Shown in pieces: positions 631-33,500 of a stretch of DNA of 64,000 nt. A program made the translations under genes and the position numbers. Every line of letters starts with the position of its first letter. The stretch's first letter is position 1. The notes beneath the pieces are model-generated. The model was given only the letters and a program-made list of their open reading frames with translations, ran no database searches and had not been told where the DNA came from. This stretch comes from Pecten maximus (taxonomy: Eukaryota), in the NCBI RefSeq assembly GCF_902652985.1, contig NC_047015.1:29946001-30010000 (forward strand), written 5' to 3'.

Positions 631-3600
631 CTAAAACTATTGGACCACAAGAAACTTTCTAGACACGCTGAGCTCAGCCTTGCCCGCATACAGTTGTCCT
701 TCTTTGTAGCAGGATACGTCTGGCAAAACGGACGAAAAGATCCCGCCGAGGTAAAGGAATATATAATATTAAAACAGACATAACCAATATATATTTATTG
801 TCAACGTATATAGAAATAAAAATGTATATTCAACATATCTAAATAATCAACGTGTGGGTACAAAATACTCTTTCCATCACGCACCCCACATGCCAATCCT
901 CCCTCACGCCTGTCCCAACTTAACCTAGTCTGATGGTAATAAGATATAAATGTATATTTGTCTTCTTTTGGCGTCATATTTATCACCTTTCAGAAAATAC
1001 CCAGATGCATAGCTATACCCTTTTACGGTGTGTCCGAAAGTTTGTCTCTTCCCCCAGTCTTATGTTACTGCGATGCCGCATTAATGAACTGGCGAGCTAT
1101 TGACCCAGAAGCGTGAGTAATAAAACATTCGTATGTATATAGTCAAATGTATCGTTTTCGCAGGTTATTTTCATCGCTATCATTTTTTTATGGTGACACA
1201 TTTAGATATCTTGTAGTCACACATATGTATATTATATAATCACACATGTAGATATTTTTTAGCCACACATATACATTTTTTGTAGTCACACACACAATAA
1301 TTTTGTATATAGATATTATAGAGTCACACATGTAGATATTTTGTAGTAACACATGTAGATATTTTGTGGTCACACACATATGTATGTTTTGCTGTAACAC
1401 ATAGATATTTTGTAGTATTATATATAGATATTTTGCAGTAACATATATACATATTTCCACATTTTATCACATGATTGCATTAACTGATTAAAGTCGATGC
1501 ATGCAAGAGCTATTCAACATGTCATATTGCTGTGTTTATGTTTCATAGACCGCTGACGCTCGCGTAAGTATATACACTCACTTATAACGTAACTGTACAG
1601 AGTTTTGATCAGAGAGTAAGAGTTCAAATAAACCTTCAGCATTATGTTCCAGCTACCATCAATAAAACTATATAAAGGAAACACTGGTGTAACCATAATT
1701 GATACAGTCAGAAAATATGCTCGATGTTTTCTATTTTATTATTCGATTAGGAACTTGGATACATACTTCTTATTGGTGGGTGTATTTTCGTAGAAAATAG
1801 AAAATACAAAAACATGCAGGCTCAAAACTATTGTGATATGTTGTAGCAACATGAAAACAATTTACCTATTTCCCGGTGGACATGAAACAGACACTTTTAT
1901 TCGAGTATCTGTTTGGATCGAACTGGCATTTGCACCCGCAATTCAGGTGAGAGAACCCTTCCTTAGTAGAAAAACTGTACCAAATTGTATCGGAACAAAT
2001 TAGATGCCGAAATTAACACTTCAAAATAATGCAGTATACATAAATCTGACGATAACTTAATTAATACATCAAGTGCTAATTTTATTTTTAATATTTGCAA
2101 CATTGCGTGTATAGTTGTGTTTCCTAATGTCAATATTGCTGTATTTATAACATGTTTCGATGAGTTTATTACATCTGTGTGGTATTGTGATACAGCGGAT
2201 ACTGGATGCCATGCATGCCGCGGAAGCCTCGGACACCGTGTCACTAATTAACAGTCTGGAAGATATTGCTGCTGTCCTGAGAAAATTGAGAGAATTGCTA
2301 CCTTGTTTTCACGGTAAAAATGAAGCACTAAACGATAAAATCAATGTTGTGCAGTGGATATAGCATCATAAAAAATGTTGCTGAGGGCAGACTGATGATT
2401 TTCCCTGCAGGTAGAGCATAAGAATGTACATGCTACTTCATTGCATGGCCGTAAAATGCGACTAAATTTTGGATCAACTATCTACTTCTTAATAATACAT
2501 TTTTGCCTTCTTTGGAGGGTACTATGGTCTATAGTGTTTTCGAGGGGTAGTGTAGTACCCGAGCTGGATAACTGATATAACTTCTTCTGATTTACTGAAA
2601 GCTAGTTATCAAAGCATTAAAAAGCATATTAACGATGCAGGCCCATTAGGTCTGTTGAGGAATTACAATATTGCGAACCATTATTAACTCTCTAACTGTC
2701 TTAGTACATCACACTCCCATTTTATTTTGCTTATTATAATATTCAATTAATATTTCACCACATGAAGGCCTATCAGCGTGTTAGCCATTTTCGTCGCCTG
2801 CACCAATCACAACAGTAACAGTGACAGAGCAATAATATTAATTCTTCATATATTTTTTAGAAAAATTAACATAGACGTGCTGATAACAACATGTTAGATA
2901 TCATATATGCAAAACAAAAAAGGTTTTTTTAATACATTAGGAACAGGAGATGAAATGTGATGGATTTTGAGTAAGAACATGCTCTATTGATGTTAAGCGA
3001 AAATTTTCTGAAGGTCAATATACAACATATTATTGCAGTCCATTCGTCTGCAAACAGTATAAAATGAATTGCCAAAAATAGTTATTAGGAGTTTTGTGCA
3101 AAGTAATTAAAAGTGATTGACAATATTGCAATGCAAGTTTTAAAAGAAAAACGAACATAGGACATTGTGTAGTGTACTGAAAGAAAATGTTTATAGTTGA
3201 TTTAATTAGTACACAAGAACTGACACCTCAACTATTAATCAACTAAAGTGAAATTTCACTTTCAAAATGCCCTGATTCAACAGAGTGGTTGAGTTTAAAC
3301 ATTTATAGTAGTCATATACGTCATTGTATCAGAGCTGGAGTGTATATCATAGACCTTTATAACAATAGAATAGTATATAAAGAATTGATCCGGAAAGTTA
3401 TTTACTCCATTGTTCTTGTGGATATCGTTAATGTACAGATTTTATATCAAACGATAATGAGACCCCCAAATCGATAAGTTAGCATTCGATTATAAATAGA
3501 TGTATATATATATATTACTCAATTGTGAATTCTCCTCTCGTGTGAAATAGCGGTCACAGTTATCAACAATCATGATAAAATCAATTAGTTTAAGTTCCAG

Positions 3601-6600
3601 AATAAATGTTTGACGTTTTCTTGTTTCTAGATTGAGGATCATTGACCAAATTATTTATCAATTGTACATTTATTAATCATCTTATCATATGTTGTTGTTT
3701 TATTAAAAAGAGAAATCATCAACACAAAAAAAAAAAACAAACAAAAAAAGGATATGATATATGATAAAATGTAACTGGCTGATTCCTTTAACTCCAGGTA
3801 TAACAGACAGGTGTGGTTCCTATGTATGCGGGGCCAGATCACCTTACACGTAATGCTAAAACAAAATTGATCAAAACAGATTTTGATGTCGACAAAAATA
3901 TAATAATCTCGAGCTAGGACAATAAATCGCTTGTCTGTCAATGATAGCATAATGAGGTTGATTACATTTGGCGCATACTTACAAATATTCAAGCTGCAGT
4001 CATAAAAATATCAAACTACATCGACCTCAAAAAATCAAAGTACTTTTCATAGGGTCGAGACGGGGAAACTATTCGCAAATAATACGTAGTTACCTCTTTC
4101 AAAGCAAAAACCATCCAGTGAGATACCTGAGAGAATATATATGTGTTTGGTTTTACAGACAGCATCACAGTCGATACATTTTTCAATGTGCTTCAACACT
4201 ACTTCGGAGGGTATGTATGTACATTTTATTATGAGAATAATTTTCATATCCCTCTTCACACCCCAATCCTAGAACATAACAATGTGTTTTATAGAATGAT
4301 ATACGACAGAAATGCACTGCAGAAACACATGACAATTTTTTCCTCAAAAATACTTACACCATTAAATTAGGGTAAATTGTATTTGATGGTTCTAACAAGA
4401 TGTGTAATTCAGAACTTATTGAAATCACAATTAATCCAAATGCTTTTCGCATACTATTTAGATACGGGCCAAAAACACCCTTACTAAATGGTCTAGTGTT
4501 TGAAGGCGTCCGCGACGAACCGATAAATGTAAGTAGCAGCAATAATTACATTACGACATACATATGTACGGTGTCTACAAACCAAAGGAGGCCAGGAAAT
4601 AGTGGACTTTACATTAGTGACTGTCTATTTACTAAACGAGTTCAATGATCATGTCACAATCCCTAATACTATTACACGAGATTTTAAGAAACACGGTAAA
4701 TCCACGAGTATAAGAGTCTGTTATCATATAAGTCATATATATGTAAGACAAAATTGTCAAATTAATTTCTTTACTCGACTCAGACGGTATTTGTCTCTCT
4801 ACAGAGACATTTGTGCGACGTCATATACAAAATGTATTAATGCTGTGTTGTAATTATGTATATATTGATCACCTTGTTTCTGATTAATTAATGTATACTT
4901 GGCAGGCCATCCCGTGCAGTGCTGCCCAGACGTCGACTCTCCCATTGGTAGACGCTGCCCTTGGGGTCAAACACAAACCAGGTAAATTGTACAGTTCTTA
5001 ACGCACCAGACTCCAATTTAAAAAAAAAAAAACTTATACTCTGGTTTATTTTACCAGCATCTACATCACACGATCTTTCTCGTTTCTCAGTGAGTAATAA
5101 TCCTAACATATCAACATTACTTCATGTGTTACTGTTTAGTTATTACATATAAGTCACTCACTCTAAATTACGTTATTTATGTAAATCACCAATCTATTTA
5201 AAGAATTTGATTATATATACCGAAGTGTTAATGTATTGTATGACATTGCATATATCTTACACATTAATGTTTTTTTTTTTATAATTAACTTATACTCAAT
5301 CAATTGTTTTATAACAAGCTGTCCTGACTGATACTACATGTAATACTCATTTAAATTTTAAACATCTCAGTGTTTTAATTGAGTAAAGAAAAAAAATCGG
5401 TAACGCTTTCCAATGATGTTTCCAAATTTCTTTTAGTCAAGCATTGATGAATCTGAGACTTTTATCAGAAGAGTGAAATTCAAAATAGGAATCAGTACAA
5501 AAATATACTCCCTAACACAAATACCGACGACCATATTAGTGTAGGTTTTGCCCTTAACTCTTCTCATTAAGCTATTTTTTCAAAAAGAAAAAAAAAGTTT
5601 TTATGTCAATACACTGTATCGTTTAATCTCAAAATGAAAGAAAATTCACCTTTAACACTGATAGCATTTCTTTGATCTATATCTAACGTTATTGGAATGA
5701 AATTCTTTTGGTATTCAGCTTATTTGATCCTTTTTAATGATATTATATCTTCCTTAATGTTGCAAACGAAAAAACACACAAATCTATAATAAGATCATTG
5801 AAAAGATTAATTCAAGAATTCATACTTTCTTGAAAGATATAACAAGTTCCAACATTACTGATTCAAGGATACTTTAAACTTGACAATTCTAATAGTCATA
5901 GAAGTTAAAACACTTCACTTCAAACTAGACAATACGGAGAAGAAAAGACACAAACTATGTTATTTTTAATCAGACGATCTTAATAATCAATGGTGACCTA
6001 CGAGGCAATTTCAACTATATGATAGAAAACGGTAATAATACACATTAAGGAGAACTATGGCTTGCCAAGTAAACGATGATGCTATTTCCAAGTGAGTGTA
6101 CATGATTTAAGGACCAATAAAGTCAGATGTTGTTTCAGGTATCCGAGCCAAGTTCGTGCGATTTAGGAAACACATGCCATTACACCATAGGCAGCTTATT
6201 GAGGCTGTTGAACAACGATCACAGATACGTCAGTACGGTAAGTCAGGCCACAGATACACAGGTAAACAACGATCACAGATATGTCAGTACGGTAAGTCAG
6301 CCCACAGATACACAGGTAAACAACGATCACAGATACGTCAGTACGGTAAGTCAGCCCAACAGATACACAGGTAAACAACGATCACAGATACGTCAGTACG
6401 GTAAGTCAGCCCACAGATACACAGGTAAACAGCGATCACAGATATGTCAGTACGGTAACCCAGTCCACAGATACACAGGTAAACAACGATCACAGATACG
6501 TCAGTACGGTAAGTCAGCCCACAGATACACAGGTAAACAACGATAACAGATACGTCAGTACGGTAAGTCAGCCCAACAGATACACAGGTAAACAACGATC

Positions 6601-9600
6601 ACAGATACGTCAGTACGGTAAGTCAGTCCACAGATACACAGGTAAACAACTATCACAGATACGTCAGTACGGTATGTCAGCCCACAGATACACAGGTAAA
6701 CAACGATCACAGATATGTCAGGACGGTAAGTCAGCCCACAGATACACAGGTAAACAACGATCACAGATACACATGTAAACAACGATCACAGATACGTCAG
6801 AACGGTAAGTCAGCCCATAAACAGCGATCACAGATACGTCAGTACGGTAAGTCAGCCCACAAACAACGGTCACAAAACGCCAGTATTGTAATTATAAGTC
6901 AACATACAGGGAAACCGACGAGTTATATCTAAACCTCAGACAGGTTCAAACACTTCATGTAGTTTTTGTTACAACGCAACCTCTATTGTATTATCATATG
7001 TCTTTACCAATTTTCCTAATTTCGATTCTAGACAGTGCAAACGTGTGGCATAGCATCATTGACGACACCTAGAAGGACAAAGTAGTCATGTAACATCTAC
7101 ATGTAATGTTGCTATTCAATTGAATATCTGTTGTCCTCTGTACATGCACATGTGGCATGTTGTCGGTAGACAGGTTCATTCTAGTTGAATACGGATTCCA
7201 AAATACGATATCAAATATTTTATTAAATAATCAATAAATTCCAGCGGTCACTGAATGATACATATTGTTTTACCTTGCAGTGACTGATTGCAACGATGAG
7301 GCTCTGACGTCAGCCTTTGAGAACTGTCTGCGTGAACTGGCTGGCTTCCGAAGTGATCACATCAAAATAGTCACCAAGTAAGTGTGGTTAGCAATATCAG
7401 AAGTCTAAAAGGAACTGTCAGTATGAACAAATAGAGGATACTGAATGGTTTAACGCTGAATATAACCTATATTTAACGAGTATGACAGAGTATGACAGAA
7501 TATCGATAATTTCAGGTGTGCGAAGCACGAGTAAAAAATATCGAAATATGCTGTCATACGAGTGATATCAATGTTATATCCAATGGGAAACCTTCAATTT
7601 TATTGCATTTTTATATTAAAAAAACAAAATTAAAAACAGAATCAGTAACATAATGCATGACGTCACTCCAAGTCATTTTCAAAGGACTGATCAATATAAG
7701 ATTTTTCTGAGAATATGTGCATGAAAAGCTAGTGTCAAATTGGTATTTTGACAAAAAACTAGTCAATTTTTTCAGAAACACAGCAAAATAACCAATGTTT
7801 CTATCTTCGCGTTGATTTGAAAAATCGGCAAATTTCCGTGAGGTGAATACTGAGGTTCACTCTGATTGGCAAAAACGAGTTTGATACATTTCTAAATTTC
7901 ACTGAAAAAAAGCAACAAAGTATTACATAATACCCTGTATTAATGTTTAATCTTAATTTGGTTCGGGTTGTGCAAATTTGCACATTGCTAACATTGTTGA
8001 CATTTAAGACTTCGCTCATACTCTAAATGATGATTCCAGTGGTTCACAATTTATGATAACTGAAATACAAGTTTCTATATTTATCTTGATTCTTTCAATG
8101 GAAGGTGTTCTTTCATATCTTGATGATAGATATTGATGTGTTTATGTTTCGGCTTGAAACAAAATCGCATTCTAATCTACTAATATCCCAATTTAATCAT
8201 CTATTTATTTCACTTCCAAATCCCAATGAACTTTATACTAAGGAAATTAACAATCTGTTTTATGATTTTCTGTGGAATGGTAAACCTGATCCAGTAAAAA
8301 GAGACATAATTACAAAAAAAAGTATGAATAAGGGGGGCTCAAGATACTTCATTTAAAATCTTTCATAACCGCTCTTAAAGCAACTTTGGTCAGACGTATA
8401 TATAATAAAGTAGGAAATTGGGATATTGTTCTAGAATCATTATTAGATAAACAGAAATTACCAAATTTTGGAATTGAATATTTAAATAAGAATAAAAAAA
8501 TTGTAAAAATATATTTTGGAAAGATGTTTTAGACGCCTGGTGTAAGACTCTTAATGCACGCAATATATATAAAACAAACATTCTTGAAAATCAAATATGG
8601 TATAATAGTGAAATCAAAATAGATAAAAAAAACAATTTTAAATAATGCCTGGTTTAAAAAAGGTATATACTTTATTCATAACATCATGAAAACAGATAAA
8701 TTTGTATACACTTTTGAATTAGGACTTAATATAAACAGTCTAAAGAATCATATTAAGTTTGAGTTAAAAGCGCATAAAATTTTAATATCCAAAAGTAACA
8801 TTAAAAACAAAATACATATTGACACACAAATACAACAGTGGCTACAAATTTAAAACAATAATACAAATATACAACATCTCTGACCTAGGTTTATTATGTC
8901 CTTTCTATGTCTGTTTTCAGTTGTTTTTGTACACTCGTTTGTTCCTTTCTTTTTTCTCTCTCTTACTCTTATGTTTGTTTGTTTTGTGTACTTATACTCT
9001 TTTTCACTGACGTAATGCTTTTTGAATAAAGTTTAATAAATTATATAATCTAAAGATCACACAATTGTCTTGGGTAGAGTGTAAGTGTTGATGTATAAAG
9101 CGTGAATTTTTTTGTCCTTACTCATGTATTTTGTATTTGTCATGTATTGTAAACTAAATTTGAAAATGAATAAAATATCAATTAAAAGAAAATCGCATTC
9201 GTACGTCTTACATGTACATAACTACTGGAACATTATACTTCTTCAGTTTAAAAACTAAATTTCCAAACGTGTTTGTATTACAGATATGTGGTGATTCCCG
9301 GCAAGGGTGTTACTCCTGACATAGAAGGTAAGGCAGTCCTTAGCTTTATGCTTAGACGAGATAGAACACAAGCTCAAGTTACAAATGTATACGGTTGATT
9401 GATCTCGGATAACATGGTACATGTACATGTTAATAACTTAATACGCTGATACCGTGTCAGGTGGCACGATCATAGAAGTTCACACACTGAAGCCAGGGGT
9501 GTGGTACTAATGTAGTTCATGTTCGTACAATGTGTACATTGATGTCACGTCACGTGGTAGCAGATCATATATCACGCTGATGTCACGTCACGTGGTAGCA

Positions 9601-9989
9601 GATCATAGTCCACGCTGATGCCACGTCACGTGGTATCAGATCATATTTCATGCTGATGTCACGTCACGTGGCATCAGATCATACTTCACGCTGATGTCAC
9701 GTCACGTGGGACCAGATCATTTCCATATGCTTATGTAGTGTTACATGGTACTTTTATCATATGTCTATAAATCTGGTATACTTAAAATGATATCTCATAA
9801 GAACACAATGTTATCTGTTAGAAATATCTATTAGCATACTGAAAGTCAGTAAAATGTTAGGTCGGCGTGGTAGTTTTTTTTGTTTTTTTTTTTGTTTTTT
9901 TGTGATAATCTAATACTTTCAAAATCTTGAACGTTTCAGGCATGATGACCTCTCTGAAATGTATGAGGAATGAATCCACTGGCACTTAG
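631..9989 (+). CDS. IDO-family heme protein, divergent paralog (gene A; IDO-like/IDO-type myoglobin-like). 5'-partial; exons 3-14 in window
   Basis: AG/GT-bounded, phase-compatible exons: 631-750 (LKLLDHKKLSRHAELSLARIQLSFFVAGYVWQNGRKDPAE), 994-1112 (KIPRCIAIPFYGVSESLSLPPVLCYCDAALMNW..), 1549-1563 (15-nt microexon), 1847-1946 (NMKTIYLFPGGHETDTFIRVSVWIELAF..), 2196-2313, 4159-4210 (DTFFNVLQHYFG), 4462-4528 (NGLVFEGVRDEP), 4906-4981 (AIPCSAAQTSTLPLVDAALGVKH), 6139-6237 (FRKHMPLHHRQLI), 7281-7377 (LAGFRSDHIKIVTK), 9284-9327 (YVVIPGKG..), 9940-9989 (MMTSLKCMRNESTGT*). Total 957 nt with no internal stop. Exon sizes 120/119/15/100/118/52 match gene B and the vertebrate IDO1 pattern. Confidence 0.92.
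1190..1460. repeat. Degenerate low-complexity tandem repeat (tagatattttgtagtcacacatatg-like) in gene A intron 4
   Basis: Recurrent 'tagatatttt..gtagtcacaca' motifs; produces the spurious 1188-1460 ORF. Confidence 0.6.
6211..6885 (+). repeat. 54-bp minisatellite (~12 copies) built from the 3' end of gene A exon 11 plus its splice donor
   Basis: Unit aacaacgatcacagatacgtcagtacg|gtaagtcagcccacagatacacaggta. The first copy overlaps the exon; donor positions after 6237, 6291, 6345, 6400 and onward. Confidence 0.95.
7432..7600. repeat. Imperfect palindromic (hairpin-forming) interspersed element in gene A intron 12
   Basis: Arms 'gtatgacag..atatcgata' and 'atatcgaaatatgctgtcatac' surround a central 'gtgcgaagcac' hairpin; resembles a non-autonomous palindromic element. 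Confidence 0.4.
8173..9188 (+). mobile_element. 5'-truncated, decayed L1/Tx1-like non-LTR retrotransposon fragment
   Basis: Peptide remnant LISQFNHLFISLPNP..EINNLFYDFLWNGKPDPVKRDII..KGG (post-RT region typical of Tx1/L1); A-rich tail with AATAAA; 12-bp target-site duplication aaaatcgcattc at 8161-8172 and 9189-9200. Confidence 0.85.
9538..9745. repeat. 38-bp minisatellite (~5 copies) in gene A intron 13
   Basis: Unit gatgtcacgtcacgtggtagcagatcatatatcacgct. Confidence 0.9.
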
Positions 9990-11781
9990 GAAGTACACGA
10001 CGGAAACGGAACAACCCGGACTTAATGTGCACGTGACTAGTTTATTATGAGACGTACAAACTGCTACGATCATTTACATATCAATTCCATAATCAGAGTT
10101 GTACAAATAGACAATACTGCTTGGCCATATGTCAATTTAAAATCTTAATACGTAATGATGTAATATTTATAATTATGCATGTAGTGTACCATGGTTTAAT
10201 CTGACGTACGCTGCTCTTTTCCAGCTAAATCCATTCATATATCATAGAGAACTAGTCTGGTTGTTAATTTTCACAATAATTTGCAAAACAACCGAAATTT
10301 CGTGCCTCAGGACCAACAATTCCGTCCAAATCAAAGACGTCGAAACTTCAAACCCCATTTCGGCTATCAATAAAAAAAAAACCCACTTTTTTCTACAGTA
10401 CCTAATTCAAAAATGTCTTTAAATGAAACTCGGCATATTGCGTTCCTACAATCTCAGAAGTCTCTTGAAAACAAAAATATCCACTGTTACACACAAAATG
10501 TGTGTGCTATTTCAATGGACAATATACAAAAAAAGAATGTATATATATACAATGTATTGTGTTCATATCACGGACTTTTTCAACGGAAGTTAAACGGACA
10601 TTTAAACGGACATTATTTATGTTTGGAAATGTGTCATTTCATTTAGACTCTGGGACAGAGTCTTCTGGAGCGAGAGGGCAGTTATCATAGAGAATTTTCC
10701 GATATTTTTTCTTTGTTCCTACATTCTATTCAATCTGTGTTTACCTGTACCTATATCTGTTTCAATGCATTGTATGGAACATAATTAATCTTGTCCCCAA
10801 GCTTATGTTTAATTCTTTGTGATGACCAGCAATTATGAATGACTTACTCTCCAGTTATCAATGTTTTGTTATCTAAATACCTTCCCGAGGCTATATTACA
10901 TCATCTATTGTTATGTCAGGAAAAGTTCACTTGCATGTCCAGTTTTATTTACCTATGCTAACGCCTTTTTGTGTCATTCATCTTAATTATATACTTTCCT
11001 ACGTGTCAATTTGGACAATGGTCAGTTCCATTTTATATGTTTACACCGGAGACCCGGGCGGTAGTTGGATTCCCAACCAGCAAATGGACAACACGTACAC
11101 TACGGATTACCAAGTGTGATCAGAACTTCATCATTTGACTTGCTTAATTTACAAAGTTGGATCGCCAGCTATATACATTGTATCTATTGGAATACAAATA
11201 CATGTGGACTTAATTATGCTGTTATAATTTGTGAAACGGTTAATATTATGATTTGAAACTATTTGAAACAAATAATATAAGAAATCATTACAAACTGATT
11301 TAAATTCTTTTTTTTTTGTGTCCTGCCATGCGTCCAATCATACAACAGTCCGAATCTAAACAGATACAGCAAAACGCTGTATGAAACATATATTAGATTT
11401 TGTTAACAAGTCCCGTCGTGCGGTTAGACATTGCCGAGTTAACTCCAATAAGCAACAGAAGTCAATCAAAACATTTAATGGGGGTGCAGTTTTTATGTAA
11501 TTAACAATTTCCTACAACGCGCGTGTTAATACATTAACTCTGCTGACCGATTTTTACTCCTTGTGAGTATTGGGTCAGAACACGGAATTCCTTATTCTAA
11601 GACATCAAATACTCAGACAAGCCTTTATAGCCAAGAGTAATGGATAGCCTAACGCCACTGAAAATGATAATACGTGCACGGTATTTGCTTAAGGCTAATT
11701 ATATCTTTTAATAATGTAGATCTTTATCAATCAAAGACTCAGTGACATATTGAGATTATACTATATAATAATACTACTATA

Positions 11782-12309
11782 CGAGGGCTGATTGATAAGT
11801 TGTGTGCCTCATATTGAAGGATTTGAATTTTGCTGGACATATTGAATTATCTATACACTTTTGCTAGTGGTGTTTAAGGACCTCAATGCCACTGTTATAT
11901 AACCCCTTTTCTTTGCTGTTCAGAAAGTCATCCACTGCATCTTAAGGTTAGGGTTAGGATTAGGGTGCCTGAAATAGCTGTTTTCAGTTTTGGAAATAGA
12001 TAAAAGTCTGATGGAGCGAGATCAGGCGAATAAGGCGAATGCTCAATCAATTTAAAGCCACAATCGTGAATGGCAGCTATGGCAATGGCAGACTCTTTCA
12101 CCCTAAACCTAAGCCTTACCGATTCTGTTCATTTTGCAGATGTCGCTTGTCTAGTTTACTTTAGAGTGCTACCTCGTTGATATAAACTAACCGAATAAGA
12201 CCAGTCCTTGGGTACACAGTCCTATATAATCAGAGAATAGAAGGACTTAAAAGAACATCCTTGAGTACCTCCTTCAGTACGAGGCTCACAACATATCAAT
12301 CATCTCTTG
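11782..12309 (-). mobile_element. Internally deleted mariner (Tc1/mariner) transposon
   Basis: TA flanks at 11780-11781 and 12310-12311. Imperfect ~29-bp TIRs (cgagggctgattgataagttgtgtgcctc vs revcomp caagagatgattgatatgttgtgagcctc). The minus strand at ~11980-12085 encodes AIAAIHDCGFKLIEHSPYSPDLAPSDFYLFPKLK, containing the mariner YSPDLAP motif. Confidence 0.9.
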
Positions 12310-14740
12310 TAATTATATAATATGTTATACATTACAATAATTATCATAGCTTTAATTAAGTTATTGTAAACAATACTATGAGTTTTGTGTTTTTTTTTGT
12401 TTTTTGTTTTGTTTTTTTGTTGTTGTTGTAGTTTTTAAATAATTGCTTTTTTGGAAAATTGCAAATTATCTCCAAATAGTCTTGATAAAATTAACATGGA
12501 AATGCAAAGTAATGTTTTGCAGCAAAGCCAATGGTGACGCAAAGATCGCTCATGTCAATATCTTGATAACCGCTTTATTATTTCCTGACCATGTCGTATC
12601 CCCTTAATACACGACACTTTAACGGCCGTTAGGAAACCATATAGAAATAAACATGCACCAGCAAATAATTTTGAGACCAATTTAATCTTCGAGTAGGTGT
12701 CTCTCACTAATGGCACATATTTACAATACCATGAAGACGGCATTATGCACACCAAAACTCGATATATACTCCACACTTTTGATACTAAAATAGAAACGTA
12801 GAAGTCAATTTCAGTCGTGTTTATTTATAAGGAGACATGGAAAGATTAGCCGACACCTTACAAAGGGGCAGCAGATCAGTCTCATCAACGCTCTTAGTAG
12901 AATACAGATGTTGTCACCTCCTTATCTTAACATGCAATGGGACAAAAAGGTCATGGTAGAAGTCGGAGGAACCCTGACGATCTCAAAGGTGGGGCCAAAA
13001 GTAAGGTGGCATGTGAATGCATCTCAAACATCATCACCTTCTTGTGAGGAGCTTTTTCATTCGCTACAATATTGAAGCAAATAGTAGTTGTTCTACTGCA
13101 ATTAATTCTGTAATAAGTCGGACTTAATTGACAGGATAATGCTTGCCTATTTGATGCAACTATTTCCGTAAAATATTGTCACGTGAAACGAATTGGCACG
13201 ACAAATTCTGTTAATACGTTTCAATTTGTTACAATCATATTTTAATTGACTTGCTACAGCCCCCGTTTTCCACAAAGTACAATTATTTATGTATTTAAAA
13301 GGCTACAATGTGTAGTGACTGTCAATACCCTTCATTCATCCTTCGTTTAAGTTGTACCGACCGGCGATCTACATTCAGATAGATGTACGTGTTCCAATAG
13401 CTCGCTACGTTCACGTCTGAAGGCAATGCCCTACAGTGACTACACTGGTACTTATTAAGGATTATTTTTAAATTACGATTATACATGTACATGTAACATA
13501 TGGTGACTAGCTTTTACATCTTCTATATTAACACTAACATACATACAAATAAATATGTACGTCATCTATGTGTCCTTGTTCATTAAGAAGCAATGTCACG
13601 TTTTGTATTTATTTGAATTTTAAAAATTGACGCTTTTCTTTAAATTATTCATTTCGAATAGCAATCATTGCTGAATAGAATAGTTTTGTTTCATTATTCT
13701 TAACGGTTACGTAATTCCTTCACTGTTATTCAATACATAAAAAACCACAAATGGATATATACACAATGTGATACAGTATAATTCGTGTTAATGTATGCAA
13801 ATAGATTTAGACGCCCGATTAAATTTTAGAAGTCCTGATAAAATACCAACTTGAATTAACAAGGGGAGGTAGTCTAGGCGTGGATCTTTTCGTAATACAT
13901 GCCTCATTCTTCGGAAGTACGTGGGCAAACATTTGGTGTTAACTATTGTATAAAGCTGATTCACAGCAGTGTTTGCCTCCATTTAGCAACCTCATTACAG
14001 CTACATAAATACCACGCAATATGAAAAGCAAGTTTAAATATAATGTTTTATTCCAAAACAATAATGATAAGTTTACTCTTATCAATAACAAGTTGAAATC
14101 TAGTTTATTATTCCGAACAATAAGAGTCTTTTCGTTTCTATAAATAATCTGTTTGCCGAATAAATGCAAGCGAGTCAAGAGACTATTACAATCAGACAGC
14201 CTCGGGCCTTTCCGGATAGCTTGGAAAAACACCCCGGATGTACATGGCGGAGTGATATGCAGATTTGCTGACTATTGACCTCGCCGGAAAACGTTTTGCA
14301 TAGTAGGGAACATGTATTACTTGAAAAGGAATGGCTAAGAATATGAATTAAAATTGGACTCTTTTCCAACATGAACTGTTGCATTAAACACATTCTTCGA
14401 GGTTATTAAATCACTATCCATTCACTTCTAATCTACGTACCTGCAGGTCTTATTTCTCTAGCAATCTTTAATAAGGAAAAGATGTGTCTGCATCAATGAT
14501 TAATGATGAATCTAATGTATCAGACTCCTTTAGTTCCAGGGTAGGATCTGGCTTCATCGCTGAACATTTTTAATCGTTTCGATTTCTCAACACATTGTAT
14601 TACTGCATCTGCTATCGTATTTGACCTACACTGTCGTCGTAGTGCTGATGGTGGAGCTTCAGAGAAGATTTATTTGAATTTGTTTCATCTTTAATATTGT
14701 TCACACTTCCCAGTTTCTCAACCAATTTAATGTAGCTTCC

Positions 14741-21561: not shown

Positions 21562-24500
21562 ATGGACTCCGCTCGTTCGTCCCCAGCGAGCCTATCAGAC
21601 TACCATATAGACCCACATGTAGGATTCCTGTTGAAGGAAGCCCTGGTAATGTAGTCTGTTTGTCGTCTACACACTTCGTACGTCTGCTACATACGTATTC
21701 TTGTTTAGACTTTCTGAAGTCCATTATTTCACTGTTTAGTATAAACATATAATTATGTTCTTGATTTTTATCATTATAAAACTAAGGTGTCACAAAGTAG
21801 GTCGCTATTGTTGGTACATAGACGAAAGCTCATAACAGCGGTACACATAATAATGTACACATAACAATAGTAATACGCATACACACTCTACCGTGCCCAC
21901 ACCTGTGATTATACTATTGTTATACATGTAAACAGGAAGTACTACCGGAGTATTTCCACGTGTGGAATCACCTATCTGATCCGTCTGTGCTTATTCCACT
22001 CATCGAAAGTCATGCACTGCGTCAGGAAATAGACAAGGTGGGTATCACTTACTGCTTCCAGGGGAAATAAGTAATTAAAATAATAAAACAGTTTGTTACC
22101 AGTGTATATACATACACCGGAAATTCATAATAAGGAGGTGAAGTAAGAACGACACAAAGGCAGGTTTTCGCAAACAAATACGGGATTTTATAATTTCCCC
22201 TTTAAAATATATACAGCGGTTACAAATATTGAAATACATGTAATTATTAAAGTGCACTGTGTTGTAAGCCAATCTGTTCTATACGTAAAAGTCGACGACA
22301 GAAACATACAAATGTACTATCCTTATATGGACATTGAATACTCTAACTTTGTTGTACTGGGCCTGGTATATTTCAGATGCCTATTCTGGACCATTCTCGT
22401 CTTACCGGACACCGACAGCTCCGACTAGCACACCTCCAACTCTCGGTCTTAGTCAATGGCTACGTATGGCAAGATGGTGACCACGGCGTCCCAAAGGTAG
22501 GCATCCTTGAGGTTTATCTCCATCTTCATAGAAAGTTACCATGATAATCGTGTCCCAAACACTGCTTGGAGATAAATGAGAGGTTAAAACGACAAAAGGT
22601 TCCATATTTTACTTACTGATCATCATTTACTATACATATCCGTCCGCATACTTTGCCATCTCGTCTTCAGAGAGTTTCAAAGCTACCACCATCGCTAATC
22701 ACATGACCCAAATCTTGCACCAAGAGTTTTTGTCCGATGTGTTTCCATTGATATCTCACGAGATCTTGTGTCATTGTGATGGTGGCCATTTTCAAAACTA
22801 TGCTGAAACGGTATTGGAAAGAGTGTTGGCGGATATGGTTAGTGACCGATGATCAGTGAGTAAAACGTGTATGTCAGGTGATAAAATAGTATCTTTAATT
22901 TTCAACCGATGTATACCTTTTATGTGTCAGGGTGAAGGGAATTGGGGAGTGTTGTTCAAAGGCCGATGAGCGTGGGTCGGAAAAATGCTTGTTTTCTGTA
23001 TGGTGCGTCACATATATATTATGCTTCCGATTACCGCGAATTTTTCCAAACATAGATTTTTGTTTATTTTCTTTAAAAATTAAAAAAAAAAAAAAAAATA
23101 AAATTTAAAGGTTTCCCATTTTGAATATAACATGCATCGTACTCGTTTGATTGAATTTACCGTGAAGATGTCGATGTTAGTCATAATGAATGGTAAACCC
23201 TATCGATATAAATATGTTGCATTATAATGTTGCTGTTCTAGAGCGTTCCACGCTGTCTGTCCGTGCCATTTTGTGGGGTTTCACGACTCCTTGGTGTCCA
23301 GCCCATCCTGTCCCACTGTGATGTTGTACTGGCCAACTGGGTGGTTATCGACAAAACAAGGTACCGCGATCATTGCACTATTATTATTATTATTATTATT
23401 TCTTTACTTCCTCCAAATTTGAAGAGCAATAGAAATAACACAAAATACACATAAATCTCAAACAACATAGAAAGAAAAGAAAATTCGAACTGATAAGAGG
23501 GGAATGCGTGTACATTTTCAGAGTATATACTCCCTGATAAAAGAAACTAACCAAAAACATTTAAAATAGCCAGGTTTATTTCTTATGCAATGTTCTTATC
23601 ATTTTACCTCATAATAACCACGATGCTCTTGTTTCTTCTTTCAGACCACCAACTTTAGAGTAAGTGTACCAAAGACCGCCTTATCGCAGCATGTCGAAAA
23701 CCCCATGGGCATTGGTTGCGTAGTTTTGTGTAATCAAGAAAGGAGAAAATTATCAGAATTGAAAGTAGACAAAAAAAATCACCTGTTTATAATTAATTTA
23801 CCTATATTGAAACAAACCGATAAAAGAGGGGAAACGGAGTTCAGTCCTGTGGAGTTCATTTTCCTTATTTAAGCTGAAAAAACTACATAGCGATAAGAGA
23901 TTGAACACTGAAAGAAGTTGTAATATAATGTGTCCATGGTTTATACCAGACAAACTAGGTATTGATAAAACTGTTATTTTTTCAGGAACATCCGGGTCCT
24001 ATACTACCCTCCTGGAGGTGATGAGGCAGCTTGGTTCTTTAAGGCCACAGTTGGCGTGGAGCTGGCATTTTGTTCTGCGTTACAGGTAGAGTATGTTTTT
24101 GTCTCTTAATGTTTTCTACTCTATCTAGTGTAGGGCACAAATCTAGCGCGAGATTGAATATATTCTCGATATCAACTTCATCCCTTAGTTGTGTCTTCCT
24201 TGTTATTTTCCAGCCTATGATGCGGGCCATGGAGGCTGCTGACGTTGGAGACGACGCAAGTCTAGTTAAATGTCTCAAGGACATTGCTGCCACAGTAAAA
24301 AACATGCAGACAGCGGTGTCCAAACTACATGGTTCGTACCCGTGTCCGGTGTATTACCTGAATGACGTAGGCATCGTCTTAAGTTTAAAATGAACAATAT
24401 GTAAAGTCCTCTTATGCCAACATATCTTTGATTTGTTTGCGTTTGTCTTCCCTTACGCTTACAGGGAGTAGACATAATATTAACAAACGTTTGAACGAAA

Positions 24501-27500
24501 TACTAACGCATTGACATGTATTCCTGTGCCTTCGTGCACGTGTTGGCAATTCGTTCGTATTATATTTGTTTACTGATGGGTAATAGCCACTATTGCCCTG
24601 TTTAAAGATGGTGTCGGTGATATTTTGATACATGTCTAATCATGGTTTATATTTATACATACATGTATTACACATATATTTGATTGGGACGATTGATCAT
24701 ATGTCCTACAGATGGACTGAGTGCAGACACTTTCTACAATGTGACGAGACCTTTTCTTACGGGGTAAGTGATTCTTCCTTTAGAGTTTGGTTTGGTTTGT
24801 TTTGTTTATTGTCATATTATCAGCCAGGGTCATTTAAGGACGTGCCAGGTTTGGAGGTGGAGGAAAGCCGGAGTACCCGGAGAACCAAACCATCGGCCTA
24901 CGGTCAGTACCTGGTAAATGCTCCACATACATGTTGGTTTCGAACTCGCAACCCAGAGGTGGAGGGCTAGTGATACAGGAGTCCGAATATCCATTTTTTC
25001 CTAACAGAAAGGCAAAATCAATTGTTCATCAAATAAGATATCGATAATTTATACAATGAAAACATCAACAAAGCATAGTATTCGACAAATACCAACAGGG
25101 GCGACTAAATCGCAACCAGCCAGCTTGTGGCCGACTTCACCGAATCAAATACGCTGTTACCTGAATGAGGAATGATACTGTATGCTACGCATCCGGACCT
25201 CCTAGGGGAATTCTTTTGATATATACACATTTTGTTACGTGGAATTCCTCGACATCTTTTAATCTCACTGGGATATAGACCATAATAAATCCTTATTACA
25301 AACTTATAACACTCGCCTAATAACATATGTGATAGATGAAATATTCATGTTATCAAAAATCCTTGTATTAAGTTATAAATCGCTATTCCGAATGCCAAAC
25401 TAACTTTCAAGCTGTTGTGATTTGTACGGTATTATGATTTATTTGTAGATGGGGCGGGGAGAGTTCCCCTTTACCCGTGGGACTAGTGTATGAAGGAGTA
25501 AGTGATGATCCAGTCCAGGTAAGCTAAAATGATTCACATTGCAATGTAGCATAAGGCAGTGATATTGAGCGGGCGTTAAAACAGTCCGTACGATACTGAA
25601 TACATTCATAGAAACAGAAATACGTATTTATGCTTAATAATTTAAACTCACAAATGTAAAATATTATTGCGACAGAATATCTACTTGTAGTGTCAAGAAA
25701 AATTCTATTTAAGACGTTGGAAGCAGTTTGAGATTATTTCAAATCGTGTTCCAGTGATTTCCCCGTTGTGATACTGTTGTGTAAATGACTGTTTTGATTT
25801 GGTTTTACATGATGATATGTACTACAGGTGTATTATATACCTTTACATGATGATATGTACTACAGGTGTATTATATACCTTTACATGATGATATGTACTA
25901 CAGGTGTATTATATACCTTTACACGATGATATGTACTACAGGTGTATTATATACCTTTGCATGATGATATGTACTACAGGTGTATTATACACCTTTACAT
26001 GATGATATGTACTACAGGTGTATTATATACCTTTACATGATGATATGTACTACATGTGTATTATATATGTACCTTACACGATGATATGTACTACAGGTGT
26101 AGTATATAACTTTACGTGATGATATGTACTACAGGTGTATTATATACCTTTTATCCGGTAGATGACCGGAGGAAGTGCCGCCCAGAGTTCTACAATACAA
26201 AGTCTGGACGCTGCCCTCGGGATAACGCACGCGCCCGGTAAGTTGCGAGTGGGGAGGGGTTGCATGTTAAAATGTATCCTCTAAATATGCACTGAAATCA
26301 TTCCCGTACATGTATGCAGGTTTACAATGTCTTTCCTAATTTATTATAATTGTTTTTTACTAAGTGTTATGTATTCTTTGCATGTACATTTAGTTTTTTG
26401 AATATTTACCCATAGTATTTAACAGAGAACAAAATTATCCCGTTTTGAAATATAATGATGTGGTCTCCTTATTATCTGAATTCCTGGGAGAGAATTTTAC
26501 GTACAGTATATATCTTGCGTTTTAATGGATTTTGATCCATTTGTATTGGGTATTTTTAATTGTTAAACATTGATTTGCTTGATTACACTATAAATGTTGA
26601 GTCTACCATTAAAACGCATCAAATATTACCAGTTAGATTCCAGATTGAATCTATTCCCCCACGGAGAAGGGGTGTACTCCCGGACTCCATTCAAGTTATA
26701 TAGGCCTGTTGTATGGAAAACCCGAATTACTGATGTTTCCTCTCCCCAAGAGTATTGGCAAGTTGGTGTTCACTTAACACGAATATGTAAATACGATATT
26801 TGTGTGCAATATTGTAGATGTGCAGGCATTTTTTGACGGAATGAAGCCATATATGCCACGCCCACATCGAAAGTTTTTGGATGATATACGGACAAGGTCA
26901 AGAATCGCAGCTTACGGTCAGTGAATATTCCATCACATCTGTGCGTTAACGTTTACTTTGATCGAAAATGAGTGTCTGACGACAGGTTTGACTGGCTACT
27001 TATGCCCTGTTATTAATTAAAAGATGATGACATTCTCCTTTTTCCTTTTTGAATTTGACGTCCTACACATATAAATTATGATACCTTGGCTGTCTGAAGA
27101 AAACACAGATTTTATGTTAATACACTGCAATAATACCTGAACGAGTTTTATGTTGAAATTGCTACATCATTAGGCAAACGTTTGGTGATCTGAAGACTAA
27201 AGGACATTTTTTATCCTGTATCAAACAAGTTCTAGACGCTAACATTTAAGAAATCTTTGTGAGTTTGATTTCTGTTAATATTTCATATCCTATATCAAGC
27301 TGATATATTCGTCTGATGAGACAAAAACATTTTAATTTCATGGTTGTGAGATATGAACCGTAACCATACATTATTCTAAACTATTCACCGTTTCCAATTG
27401 CCACATAGGAGATTCTAAATTGTAGTCACAGAGGTGTACAAAAACGAGGTTTTTAGGGAAAAACAGCTCATTGTGCTCCAAATACGACAAATGTCAGTTT

Positions 27501-30500
27501 AAAAAGGAAAATCTGTGAAACTTTGTTCAAGATTTCAAGATATATTTATTCAACTCAGGTGCACTATTGATCGCAGCAAGAAGTCATGCATTTACAAAAA
27601 AATATCATACAATTTAATTGTCACCATCATCTTCTGAATGATTTGGTATTTCCGACAATATCATAGTCTTTCAGTTATATCTATACAGAAATAGTAAGAC
27701 ATAATTATCATCATATCACCTTATTTATTGAATATACCTAAACCTCGTGTATATATCTATACGTACAATGAGTACATAAGTTTAAAGTTATTCATAGTCA
27801 TAGGTCTACATGACATATAGATATGTACAGATATAGTTAGACAGAGGTTTTTCCTTTTTTTATCATTATCTAACCGTATTAGCAGTATTACATAAAATTA
27901 TGCAAACTTTACACATGGCGAAAAAACAATGATAAAACCAATATATAATACGTCTAAGTAAAGTATATCCAATGTAATTCTTCTTCTTCTAATATTGTTA
28001 AGTAATATAATGCTTCTATTTTTTCCAAAAATGTTTGACAAAACTTCAACATTGCATATGATACAAAGGCCGTACATTTTGTTCATATTAGGGTAAGAAC
28101 AGTGATTATAAGAAATATTTTTGTCAAAATTGTTTAACAGTTGCATGTTAACATTGGAAAAGATTGAAAAGATAATGATAAGTATCGCCAATGTCATGAA
28201 AACAAAGATTGCAAATTCTATTTTATTTTGGAATCTTTATACATCTCCCTGTTTCTATTGGTAAATACATATTAGATGTTTCAAACTTTGGATTGTCTTT
28301 CTATTGGTTTCAGCTTTAATAGGTATTTTTAAGAATTTGTTTTGAAAATAGATAAGGTACGTCCTCTTGAGGAGCTCTCAATATTGTTAAATCCTTTCTG
28401 GATAAACTGATCTTGTAATGTTAGTTTGTTAATAATTTCTATTAAATGTACTTTTTTTTTTTTTTTTTTTAATTCCAAATGAAATTTAAACCAGTTTCTG
28501 TTAATATATCAAAAACATTCTTTAACGGTTTGAACTCCCTTGTTCCATTTGTTTGTAAATTACACATTCAGCTACACATATCACTCGACAGATTATAACA
28601 CTATAGCAATTTACACCAAAACATAATTCTGCTTTTAGCTTCAATATATATATATAAAGGGGATAGCCCGGTCTCCCCATACATCATGAAGTTCGGTGTG
28701 CTTCTTCTAACATTTAATATACATTTGCAAAATTGCAAATGTACTTTTTCAACAGCACTTAAAGTTTCATTGTCCTATATTTCTACAGAAAAAAGTATTG
28801 ATACCACAAGAGAATAAAAAACATGTACATTATTGTATCTTTAACTGAAGGTCTACAAGTAAAGAATATATCTGATTTTTTTTATAAACAGCATGCATCC
28901 AGTATCCAATCATTACAATATATTTCAAATGCCCTAATAAGAGCATATCGGAGTCATTCAGCCGAATCGGACATAACGATAATATCATAATCATAGAGAA
29001 TTATAATCAACTTTAAGTACTTTTCTTGGCTTTCACTCACATTTTGTACTGTTTGTAAACAATTAACACCTTTTTCTGTAAAAAAATTCTTCACTTCTAG
29101 ATCATTTAGGTATATGGCATACAAAAATGGTGATAGTATTCTGAATTTACCATTAAGAACTATATGTATGAGCGTAAAAGGACCTTAACATGTCGTTGAG
29201 ATTCGTGTGCTATATGAAAAGTACAAACGAATAGATATGAAAAGTACAAACGAATTGTATTTGGAGCGCCAACGACTCTTCCTTACATGACCTCGTTTAT
29301 ACCAATGTGCTTTCAATTTAGAAATCTCACTTAATAAGGGGGGAAAGTCATCATATAAAATCATATTGAATTGTATTCCCGTGACTCCAGTACTTACTGA
29401 ATTTTTGTGTAATATCTACATGAGGTTACATCTAAAAAAAAATATTTTTTTTTGTATTTTTAGTCCGTTCAAGTTCGAATCAGGATGTGAACGACGCCTA
29501 CAATGACTGTATCACGTCTTTAGTGGACTTCCGTAGTTATCACATACAGATTGTCACCAAGTAGGTAACATACAGATTGTCACCAAGTAGGTAACATACA
29601 GATTGTCACCAAGTAGGTATCACATACAGATTGTCACCAAGTAGGTAACATACAGATTGTCACCAAGTAGGTATCACATACAGATTGTCACCAAGTAGGT
29701 ATCACATACAGATTGTCACCAAGTAGGTATCACATACAGATTGTCACCAAGAAGGTATCACATACAGATTGTCACCAAGTAGGTATCACATACAGATTGT
29801 CACCAAGTAGGTATCACATACAGATTGTCACCAAGTAGTTATCACATACAGATTGTCACCAAGTAGGTATCACATACAGATTGTCACCAAGTAGGTATCA
29901 CATACAGATTGTCACCAAGTAGGTATCACATACAGATTGTCACCAAGTAGGTATCACATACAGATTGTCACCAAGTAGGTATCACATACAGATTGTCACC
30001 AAGTAGGTATCACATACAGATTGTCACCAAGTAGGTATCACATACAGATTGTCACCAAGTAGGTATCACATACAGATTGTCACCAAGTAGGTATCACATA
30101 CAGATTGTCACCAAGTAGGTAACATACAGATTGTCACCAAGTAGGTATCACATACAGATTGTCACCAAGTAGGTATCACATACAGATTGTCACCAAGTAG
30201 GTATCACATACAGATTGTCACCAAGTAGGTATCACATACAGATTGTCACCAAGTAGGTATCACATACAGATTGTCACCAAGTAGGTATCACATACAGATT
30301 GTCACCAAGTAGGTATCACATACAGATTGTCACCAAGTAGGTATCACATACAGATTGTCACCAAGTAGGTATCACATACAGATTGTCACCAAGTAGGTAT
30401 CACATACAGATTGTCACCAAGTAGGTATCACATACAGATTGTCACCAAGTAGGTATCACATACAGATTGTCACCAAGTAGGTAACATACAGATTGTCACC

Positions 30501-33500
30501 AAGTAGGTATCACATACAGATTGTCATCAAGTAGGTATCACATACAGATTGTCACCAAGTAGGTAACATACAGATTGTCACAAAGTTGGTATCACATACA
30601 GATTGTCACCAAGTAGGTATCACATACAGATTGTCACCAAGTAGGTATCACATACAGATTGTCACCAAATAGGTAACATATAGATTGTCACCAAGTAGGT
30701 ATCACATACAGATTGTCACCAAGTTGGTATCACATACAGATTGTCACCAAGTAGGTACACTACAGCTTACGTGGACTTTGCGGTTTCCACGCGTCCGTCA
30801 CGGACGTGGGCATCGCGGACCCCACTCGCCCACCGGATATGGCATTCCGCGACGTTCCGTCATATATCGTGGACATCAGCTGACTGATACGGTATCCACT
30901 CGGCATCACGGTATGTGACGATCCGCGATTAGTGGTGGGCATAGTTCAACTCGAGACACCGTGTTCCACGACGATCCACGATACGTGGTGGACATGCATT
31001 TCATTTTAAAGCCCGTGGTCCATGTCGATCCGCGATATACAGTGGGTACAAGTTGTTTGCTGTTCATTTCTGATCTACACGAGTTATATCCCTTCGTCTT
31101 TCGGTAGCGGTAGTGGTATCGGTATCGTTTATCAGAATTATGCATGGTTCCATGTTGGCGGTGTAGATAAGCCTTTATGATTCGGATGAAATTGAAGAAC
31201 ATTTCAAGTTTTATTTAAAGCTTTAGACCCTTGGTCCATCAATAGCGTTATTATGGCCATATTATAAACATTAAAAAACAATCGCAATATATTAAGCACC
31301 GTTAATATTTAATGTAACTTAACATAAGCTGTTTCACCCATCCAGCATTCGCCATTGACGTATTCACGTTTTTAAAAAATATTCATTTATTTTAGAAATA
31401 TTGCATTCAGTACACGACATTGAATTGGGAAAATAGAAAAAAACCACTGCGACATAAGAACAGCTTTACCAAATCTCATCAAAATATCTAAACTTCGGCA
31501 TTTGAATCATTATTCCGTTATCTTTTAAACATCGGTGTTATCATGTTATCAGACTCCGACCATATTAAAATATGCGGAATATCGAATGTTGTGACAACTA
31601 GTTGTATATCTATTCTAAAGTGTACACACAAAAGAGCTGTAAATAACTGCCTATCTGGGTATCTTGTATACATGTAATATCGTCAATGTGGTATCTAAAC
31701 GGAAAACACAGACATGAATTAAACATTACATTATTGCATCAAAAGCAGAATGGATTCAGAATGTAATTAAAACATTACTACGGCCCTTTCTGCAATATAA
31801 TTTACATGTACAATGTTTATATACATTCCCTAAATGTACCGATTTATGATAACCATTTAATGTCTTTATATTTATCATGTATATTGAGTGCTTTGCATTC
31901 TGGTCCAATTATGGTTTCTGTTTCTATCACCACTGTGATTTCAATGATTTGTATTCAATCATATTTTAAGTCATAAATTACTCATTGAATGCAACACTTT
32001 TTATGCGGTGTTTTGCATAAACATGGCAGCCATAACCGCTGATTTTCTCGGCAGCTCGTCACACGCAGATGATTCTATTTTAGCTGTCTTGTCAATCAAA
32101 CGGGGTATCTGACGGCATCCGTGAGTTTCATTGGTTAGTGAGAATGATTGACAAGACACTAAAGCTTGTTACACTCCAGTGATCTCTGACTCTGTCAATC
32201 AAACACTGTAGAAAGGCGTCCGTTAATTCCATTGGTTGGTGAGAATGATCGACAAGTCAGCGTACGTGCACATGTTTTGTCGTCAGCTGTAATAGCAGAC
32301 GTAAAACCCGTTAAATAAATATTGAGAAATATTATCAAAAACTGTATCGATACATACCGTCAAAACTGATTATCTACCGGTTTTAATAGCCTATATAGGG
32401 ATATATTCCGCACAGTGACCTCACGTGTGAGGTTCGCCCAGAGACCGTATTTGAGTCATTGCATTAATAGTCTATTAAAAGTTTATTCTAGAGATGCTAA
32501 TATTTTAGGCAACGATGTTGCACGATTTGTGATATTCTGTTCCGACTCATCCACTCATCGGTTTTGGGTTACATTTCATTTGTTGGAGAGCTCGAGCTAA
32601 ATTATTGAAGATAGGAAAGTCTCAATGCACCTTCGATATCAGAGACGGGAATCGGTTGATCTGTGGAATAAACAATAAAAAAAAGTCCTGTCCTAGGACT
32701 GGTCATGATAATGTTATATGAATATCTACACGTAGAAACACGAACTGAGATACATCCGAGTCCGTTTTATAACCGACGAGTGGCCAACACCACAAAGGCC
32801 AGAGACCGGCAAGCCGCGGTCACAGAGGCGTGTTAAGATAATAGCCCGGTAAATACCACATCTTAATTATCTCTTAACTCTAACATGTTGAATTTACCTG
32901 TAGGGCAGTTTGTTTTGATAATGATTATATAAAAGGACTCCCAATGCCAAGAAGTGGATCCTTAACTGTAGGTAAATTTAATTCATTTATTCCTTTGGCG
33001 TTTCTACCAATCTGATTTTACAACATATACAAAGACATATACATGTACATTAGCAATACAAGATCGTGATATCACAGGTTCAACGGGATCAGACCGCTAT
33101 TTAGGAAATATATATAAACAAATGTAAACAGGTGCCTGCAATTAATGCGAATAAGACAACGATAATGCAAATGTAACATTTGGTATAATGTTCTATTATA
33201 ACGGGCCGTATACAACATGTCACAACTATATAATGTTCTGTTTTAACGGACCGTATATAACATGTAACCTCCCACTAAATATGTATTATAACGGGCCGTA
33301 AATCATATGTAACCTTTGAGCAATATTCTATTATAACGGGCCGTATAAAACATGTAACATCTCACTAAATGTCTATTAAAACGGACCATATATAACATGT
33401 AACATTTATATAACGCTCTAATATAACGGGCCGTATACAACATGTCACAATTATATCATGTTCTGTTTTAACGGACCGTATATAACATGTAACCTCCCAC

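Follow-up and report, generated by a model that had tools for sequence, protein, structure and literature searches.

Gene A, an IDO-family gene in a 64,000-nucleotide, N-free window of the Pecten maximus genome (C1:29946001-30010000; positions without a prefix are those of the window), is predicted to encode a protein without three defining features of a tryptophan (Trp)-dioxygenating IDO, namely Arg231, the Gly261-Gly262 pair and the GTGG JK loop (residues in human IDO1 numbering). The IDO and TDO enzymes are defined by the clamping of Trp over heme. In the aligned sequences, the amino-acid clamp for L-Trp is shown to be gone from the predicted protein, and the heme site and the indole-packing residues (Tyr126, Phe163, Phe226, Ser263 and Ala264) to be kept. 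We infer that gene A is functional and belongs to a scallop-specific subfamily of heme proteins, derived from IDO, whose handling of L-Trp is no longer canonical. Such a natural subfamily, without a Trp clamp yet maintained intact by selection across four genera of scallops, offers a natural and testable experiment on other uses of the IDO scaffold. It could reveal a new heme-dependent indoleamine reaction in a group with prominent serotonin signalling or, alternatively, could be a second case of an IDO turned gas binder.

The genome of P. maximus holds five IDO genes in one cluster of ~120 kb, namely C (+), D (-), A' (+), A (+) and B (+). A' (protein P0053) lies 23 kb upstream of A, is 78% identical to it and has the same length in all 14 exons. 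Word searches returned five further close relatives, three from Argopecten irradians and one each from Ylistrum balloti and Mizuhopecten yessoensis. In a maximum-likelihood tree (IQ-TREE, LG+C20), built without gastropod and non-scallop bivalve IDOs, A, A' and these five genes formed one clade with support of 100/100, sister to the scallop gene-B type (98/92). The A clade sits on a stem of 0.65 (B clade, 0.28) and has tips about twice as long as those of B. In our reading, a canonical B-like IDO was duplicated in tandem before the four scallop genera split and gave rise to the A subfamily, which would at first have changed in a burst and later evolved more slowly.

Residues were compared across 31 aligned sequences, including the seven clade members and 21 canonical IDOs from cnidarians, echinoderms, a nemertean, mammals and the scallop B and C/D types. 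Position 231, which is Arg in all 21 canonical IDOs, reads Q/A/S/Q/Q/L/L across the seven clade members, with the caveat that the Ylistrum protein carries an Arg at the position next to 231. Gene A has Gln there, within the FFNVLQ of exon 8 (4159-4210; codon 4194-4196). None of the 21 canonical IDOs departs from Gly261, Gly262 or Tyr249; within the clade Gly262 is absent from every member and Gly261 from six of the seven, being kept only by the Mizuhopecten gene. The distal DE loop of gene A, encoded by exon 10 (4906-4981), accordingly has PCSAAQ at the site of the canonical GGSA(G/A)Q, the Pro-Cys codons lying at 4912-4917. All seven members have Phe for Tyr249 and either Tyr or Phe for Trp237, a residue kept in 20 of the 21 canonical IDOs; in gene A both changes fall in exon 9 (4462-4528), as Phe (codon 4499-4501) and Tyr, respectively. 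The JK-loop Gly-Thr is likewise kept in 20 of 21 canonical sequences, and a deletion that includes the GTGG part of this loop is found in 7/7 clade members. In gene A the loss lies in exon 13 (9284-9327), which at 44 nt is 39 nt shorter than its 83-nt counterpart in gene B (80 nt in paralog C) and encodes a short link, GKGVTPDIEG, without GTGG. A search of 7378-14000 in all + frames found no hidden GTGG-like exon, a possibility that the preliminary description had itself raised. The Cys of PCSAAQ was considered separately as a new distal ligand and rejected, Cys occupying position 262 in only three of the seven clade members.

The residues on the heme side are those of an IDO throughout. Arg343 and His346 are invariant in all 31 aligned sequences; in gene A both are encoded by exon 12 (7281-7377) within FRSDHIKIVTK, with the propionate-binding Arg codon at 7349-7351 and the proximal His codon at 7358-7360. 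The Tyr353 equivalent is kept in every clade member and Val350 in six of them, the seventh having a conservative Ile. Tyr126 is also kept in all seven (in gene A within LCYCD, codon 1066-1068 of exon 4), where gene-B-type proteins have His. On the indole side the clade keeps Phe163 (6/7), Ala264 (6/7), Phe226 (5/7) and Ser263 (5/7), and five of its seven members have Phe for Leu234. Ser167 is Ser in gene A and in four of the seven clade members overall. In the canonical IDOs, 68 columns reach a conservation of at least 85%, and 46 of these stay conserved in the clade. The preliminary description had reported FFNVLQ, PCSAAQ, an exon 13 shortened by 39 nt without GTGG, and IDO1-type Tyr126 and Ser167 where gene B has His and Thr; the alignment and the exon comparison reproduced each of these. 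Its view of the losses as a concerted event in gene A did not stand, since they are common to a clade of seven scallop genes and are thus an old trait of the subfamily.

The coding sequence that A shares with A' is under purifying selection. For this pair dN (nonsynonymous divergence) was 0.127 and dS (synonymous divergence) 0.44, giving a dN/dS of 0.29 by the NG86 (Nei-Gojobori) method (bootstrap 95% interval 0.21-0.41) and of 0.31-0.36 by other methods, and all sliding windows of 60 codons were below 1. The introns of the two genes are mostly unalignable; only short patches and a shared minisatellite unit align. In simulations of neutral change at 0.1, 0.15 and 0.2 per site, the open frame survived with a probability of 0.015, 0.0016 and 0.0004, respectively. 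Decay of the subfamily is unlikely, because dN/dS is 0.29, the introns are unalignable and intact relatives exist in four genera. The ratio, which is not near 1, also agrees with the earlier suggestion that gene A is not a young pseudogene. The exon most divergent between A and A' is exon 10, with differences at 25 of 76 nt. As a separate observation, dS between the two genes is uneven, rising from ~0.3 in the 5' half to 0.77-0.87 in codons 221-320, which could reflect past 5' gene conversion or a mutational hot region.

An AlphaFold2 model of the gene A protein, made from an alignment of 76 sequences, shows the two-domain helical fold of IDO with a predicted local distance difference test (pLDDT) score of 94.1 and a predicted template modelling (pTM) score of 0.92. 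Foldseek aligned it with IDO1 and IDO2 crystal structures at template modelling (TM) scores of 0.92-0.95 and root-mean-square deviations of 1.6-2.0 A. The JK loop is modelled as a six-residue link joining helices 316-348 and 355-371. Gene A therefore shares with canonical IDOs (human IDO1 and IDO2, gene B) the PF01231 domain, the fold and His346, Arg343, Tyr126, Phe163, Ser263 and Ala264, and with gene B the same 14-exon structure with identical phases. It differs from them in the loss of Arg231, Gly261-Gly262, Trp237, Tyr249 and GTGG, and in its roughly twofold faster evolution.

In human IDO1, Thr379 holds the substrate carboxylate together with Arg231 and the amine together with the heme 7-propionate; Arg231Ala and Arg231Leu abolish activity, as does a Gly-to-Pro change in the loop, and Thr379Ala causes a fivefold drop (PMC8518741). 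An altered substrate would fit gene A somewhat better than an oxygen carrier, because the indole-ring side of the pocket is kept and the carboxylate and amine side is lost. It is quite possible, though short of probable, that gene A encodes a heme oxygenase or oxidase whose substrate, an indole or another small aromatic compound, has no carboxylate. The heme would then bind O2 as IDO does, in a pocket made more open and, by the Phe at position 234 in five of the seven members, more hydrophobic. The protein would oxidise a carboxylate-free indole-type or other small aromatic compound without feeding the kynurenine pathway, which would be covered by TDO and paralogs B, C and D. Because P. maximus has TDO along with three canonical IDOs (B, C and D), Trp catabolism would not depend on gene A. 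On balance, we lean slightly towards a second, independent recruitment of the IDO fold outside Trp catabolism, the vetigastropod myoglobin being the first; the scallop protein would act on indoles that have no carboxylate, such as serotonin, tryptamine or indole itself, or on a gas.

The conservation of Tyr126, Phe163, Ser263, Ala264 and the heme residues could also be that of a residual, inefficient L-Trp dioxygenase, comparable to IDO2 and partly redundant as a duplicate. Low-efficiency IDO paralogs are common, and according to a review the Arg231 mutants of IDO1 lose activity with no heavy change in the substrate dissociation constant (PMC8518741). We nevertheless regard this as quite unlikely, as three Trp-binding elements are gone from the clade, Arg231Ala and Arg231Leu abolish IDO1 activity (PMC8518741), and TDO and three canonical IDOs are already present. 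The parallel with vertebrate IDO2 is instructive here. Each is a duplicated IDO that handles L-Trp poorly or differently (in gene A, as predicted) and may use a wider range of ligands; IDO2 can take 5-substituted tryptophans and binds serotonin in a non-productive way, and its His143Tyr change, at the Tyr126 position, raises activity more than 1000-fold (PMC13440583). However, IDO2 keeps Arg231, GGSAAQ and GTGG, and its defect lies in His143 and Thr184. Gene A is the opposite case, having the IDO1-type Tyr and Ser at these positions and having lost the anchors.

Retention of the heme ligands with loss of Trp recognition would equally suit a non-catalytic gas-binding heme protein, either an O2 store or sensor or a binder of NO or H2S, in parallel with the IDO-derived myoglobin of vetigastropods. 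The IDO-like myoglobins are reported to be without Trp-degrading activity (PMC4191572), and variable distal residues would fit a ligand that needs iron alone. The abalone protein resembles gene A, as we interpret the latter, in being a molluscan IDO-derived heme protein that appears to have abandoned Trp catabolism (PMC4191572), and we class the A subfamily, from its predicted proteins, among the IDO-derived heme proteins that left this pathway. The hosts differ, however: vetigastropods with IDO-like myoglobin are without a conventional one (PMC4191572), whereas scallops keep many conventional globins, the P. maximus genome giving 13 or more ordinary globin-domain matches that passed the cut-off. 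Moreover, Tyr126 is the sole conserved polar distal residue able to stabilise O2, removal of the JK loop should open the pocket and favour autoxidation, and there is no sign of abundance in muscle, the contigs of four public runs having covered no exon. The 'myoglobin-like' name is generic for molluscan IDOs and is also borne by canonical gene B (PMC9481534). A gas-binding role is unlikely on this evidence. Of the neofunctionalisation that the preliminary description had proposed, changed function fits better than decay, but its oxygen-carrier form has gained no positive support; the residues of the distal pocket, including Cys at 262, differ among the clade members.

A heme-independent or regulatory role, as a scaffold, heme buffer or signalling protein for which catalysis is irrelevant, would accommodate the variable pocket residues and fast evolution of the clade, and non-enzymatic functions are known for IDO1 (PMC12079389, PMC9786828). 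Nevertheless, no clade member departs from the proximal His, the Arg or the helix around them, a sign that heme remains important, and Tyr249, an immunoreceptor tyrosine-based inhibitory motif (ITIM) tyrosine in mammals, is Phe in 7/7. Such a role is therefore, in our judgement, very unlikely.

Several points weigh against gene A being a working enzyme on an altered substrate. No replacement anchor is conserved, and positions 231, 260-266 and 164-167 vary within the clade; such variable distal positions speak against a tightly recognised new substrate, which would predict conservation. The sequence does not allow a substrate to be named. The A clade evolves about twice as fast as canonical scallop IDOs: between genera its members are 59-62% identical, whereas the same pairs of species reach 78-80% in the B and C clades. 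Gene A has accumulated 33 private amino-acid changes against 11 in A' (p=0.0009, nearest Argopecten outgroup), and these include the distal-loop Ser to Pro and Phe387 to Ser. Finally, contigs of the four public runs that fell on 4100-10050 touched intronic repeats only (~5500-5700, 6290-6690 and 7480-9270) and no exon of gene A. The last two points, along with changes at otherwise conserved sites and the roughly tenfold repetition of the exon 11 donor by a minisatellite, would be expected if gene A were silent or had only lately escaped constraint, on the way to becoming a pseudogene, and A' carried the function of the subfamily. We give this little credence. All 14 exons, the splice sites and the frame are intact, the pairwise dN/dS of 0.29 comes with no window at 1, and the rate asymmetry between A and A' is weak with the other four outgroups (p 0.06-0.37). 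The absence of exon coverage in the four runs offers no support either way and is not evidence that gene A is silent. Mentions of IDO1 in scallop proteome and transcriptome papers leave the paralog unspecified. Some repeats of intron 12 (7480-9270) occurred at high contig depth (7518-7565); the intron 12 repeats are probably copies of a dispersed, transcribed repeat.

Gene A has 12 GT-AG exons inside the window, consistent in phase, and two more upstream, 14 in total, with lengths of 81, 96, 120, 119, 15, 100, 118, 52, 67, 76, 99, 97, 44 and 50 nt, all on the + strand. The frame is free of stops up to the TAG at 9987-9989. The borders were checked by a script, which, together with the exact mapping of a known protein, bears out the 12 in-phase, stop-free exons with a proximal His that had first been noticed. 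This protein, P0001 (372 aa, 'myoglobin-like [Pecten maximus]' at NCBI), was found by querying a representative protein library with exon 994-1110. It maps exactly to the gene A exons save 1549-1563 and places exons 1 and 2 upstream of the window (C1:29938901-29938981 and 29944520-29944615). Exon 3 (631-750), the first in the window, has AG/GT borders and phase 0 and matches Pfam IDO positions 54-89. Exon 4 (994-1112) is the most conserved IDO exon (Pfam E=1e-10, positions 94-130), its Tyr126 codon being assigned by alignment. Exon 6 (1847-1946), recognised from borders, Pfam and alignment, encodes the Phe163 and Ser167 equivalents, the latter in FIRVS (Ser codon 1908-1910). Exon 7 (2196-2313) was placed by its AG/GT borders, phase and a Pfam scan, exons 8 and 10 by borders and alignment, exon 12 by borders and Pfam, and exon 13 by comparison with B and C. 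Exon 9, read from the alignment, is one codon shorter than its gene B counterpart. Exon 14 (9940-9989), also read from the alignment, ends in the stop and has Ser at the Phe387 equivalent (codon 9951-9953), a change seen in gene A alone among the clade members.

With the IDO profile (Pfam PF01231), seven of the eight exons that reached the scanning minimum of 20 aa (22-40 aa) matched colinearly over positions 54-354, the best at E=1e-10; one exon of 22 aa gave no match, and all of at least 25 aa did. P0001 itself carries PF01231, to which human IDO1 and IDO2 chains match at E values of 1e-61 to 1e-68.

The micro-exon 5 of 15 nt (1549-1563) has AG/GT borders, is in frame, and completes an Ala codon before adding Pro-Leu-Thr-Leu. 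The spliced model that includes it has 377 aa, and P0001 equals this model minus the micro-exon. A 15-nt exon lies at the equivalent place in A', in B (23645-23659) and in C (L007:9641-9655), so that four of the five IDO paralogs checked possess it. Because A', B and C have the same exon, its omission from P0001 is probably an annotation slip or an alternative form, and we infer that it is used in gene A.

Exon 11 (6139-6237), defined by borders and repeat analysis, ends in 27 nt that, with the donor, open a 54-nt minisatellite at 6211-6770 (and 6776-6874), with 10.3 copies at 94% match. The unit consists of these last 27 nt, the GTAAGT donor and the intron beyond; being a multiple of 3 and free of stops in the exon frame, it would add 18-residue repeats if donors further downstream were used. 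Intron 13 holds a 38-nt tandem repeat at 9540-9720 (4.8 copies, 90% match) with the palindromic core CACGTCACGTG.

The genes of the A subfamily are already in public databases under automatic names, and the subfamily is undescribed in the searchable literature, which includes few of the relevant subscription papers. The NCBI name of gene A is taken from IDO-like myoglobin, a name that canonical molluscan IDOs have also received (PMC9481534), among them gene B and its orthologs. We rejected it as functional evidence, as it is generic and shared with gene B. Neither word searches (queried with P0001, with the clade alignment and with an alignment of a coral IDO and gene B and C exons) nor the exon search of the representative library returned gastropod IDO-like myoglobin sequences. 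The comparison shows that the molluscan labels 'myoglobin-like' and 'IDO2-like' hide at least three distinct scallop IDO lineages.

Gene B (21562-39956, +), the canonical tandem paralog, was located by exact mapping of its protein P0110, except for the last few codons, which did not map cleanly. It has His and Thr at the Tyr126 and Ser167 positions and keeps Arg231, GGSAAQ and GTGG. The same mapping placed its exons 12 and 13 at 29464-29560 and 39262-39344 (+), the latter of 83 nt, on either side of an intron of ~9.7 kb (29561-39261). Paralogs C (+) and D (-) form a divergent inverted pair with 68% identity (L007-L010, C1:29873800-29897700). They carry GTGS for GTGG, have His and Lys in place of Ser167 and Ile349, respectively, and constitute a third scallop IDO lineage on a very long stem (1.19). 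The protein of paralog D, P0140, gave no exact mapping onto the genome. Downstream of gene B, the window contains a retroelement frame of 909 aa with a reverse-transcriptase domain (45321-48050, -), a single-exon gene of the galactosyltransferase family (52366-53481, -) and a rhodopsin-family receptor frame (56574-57425, +).

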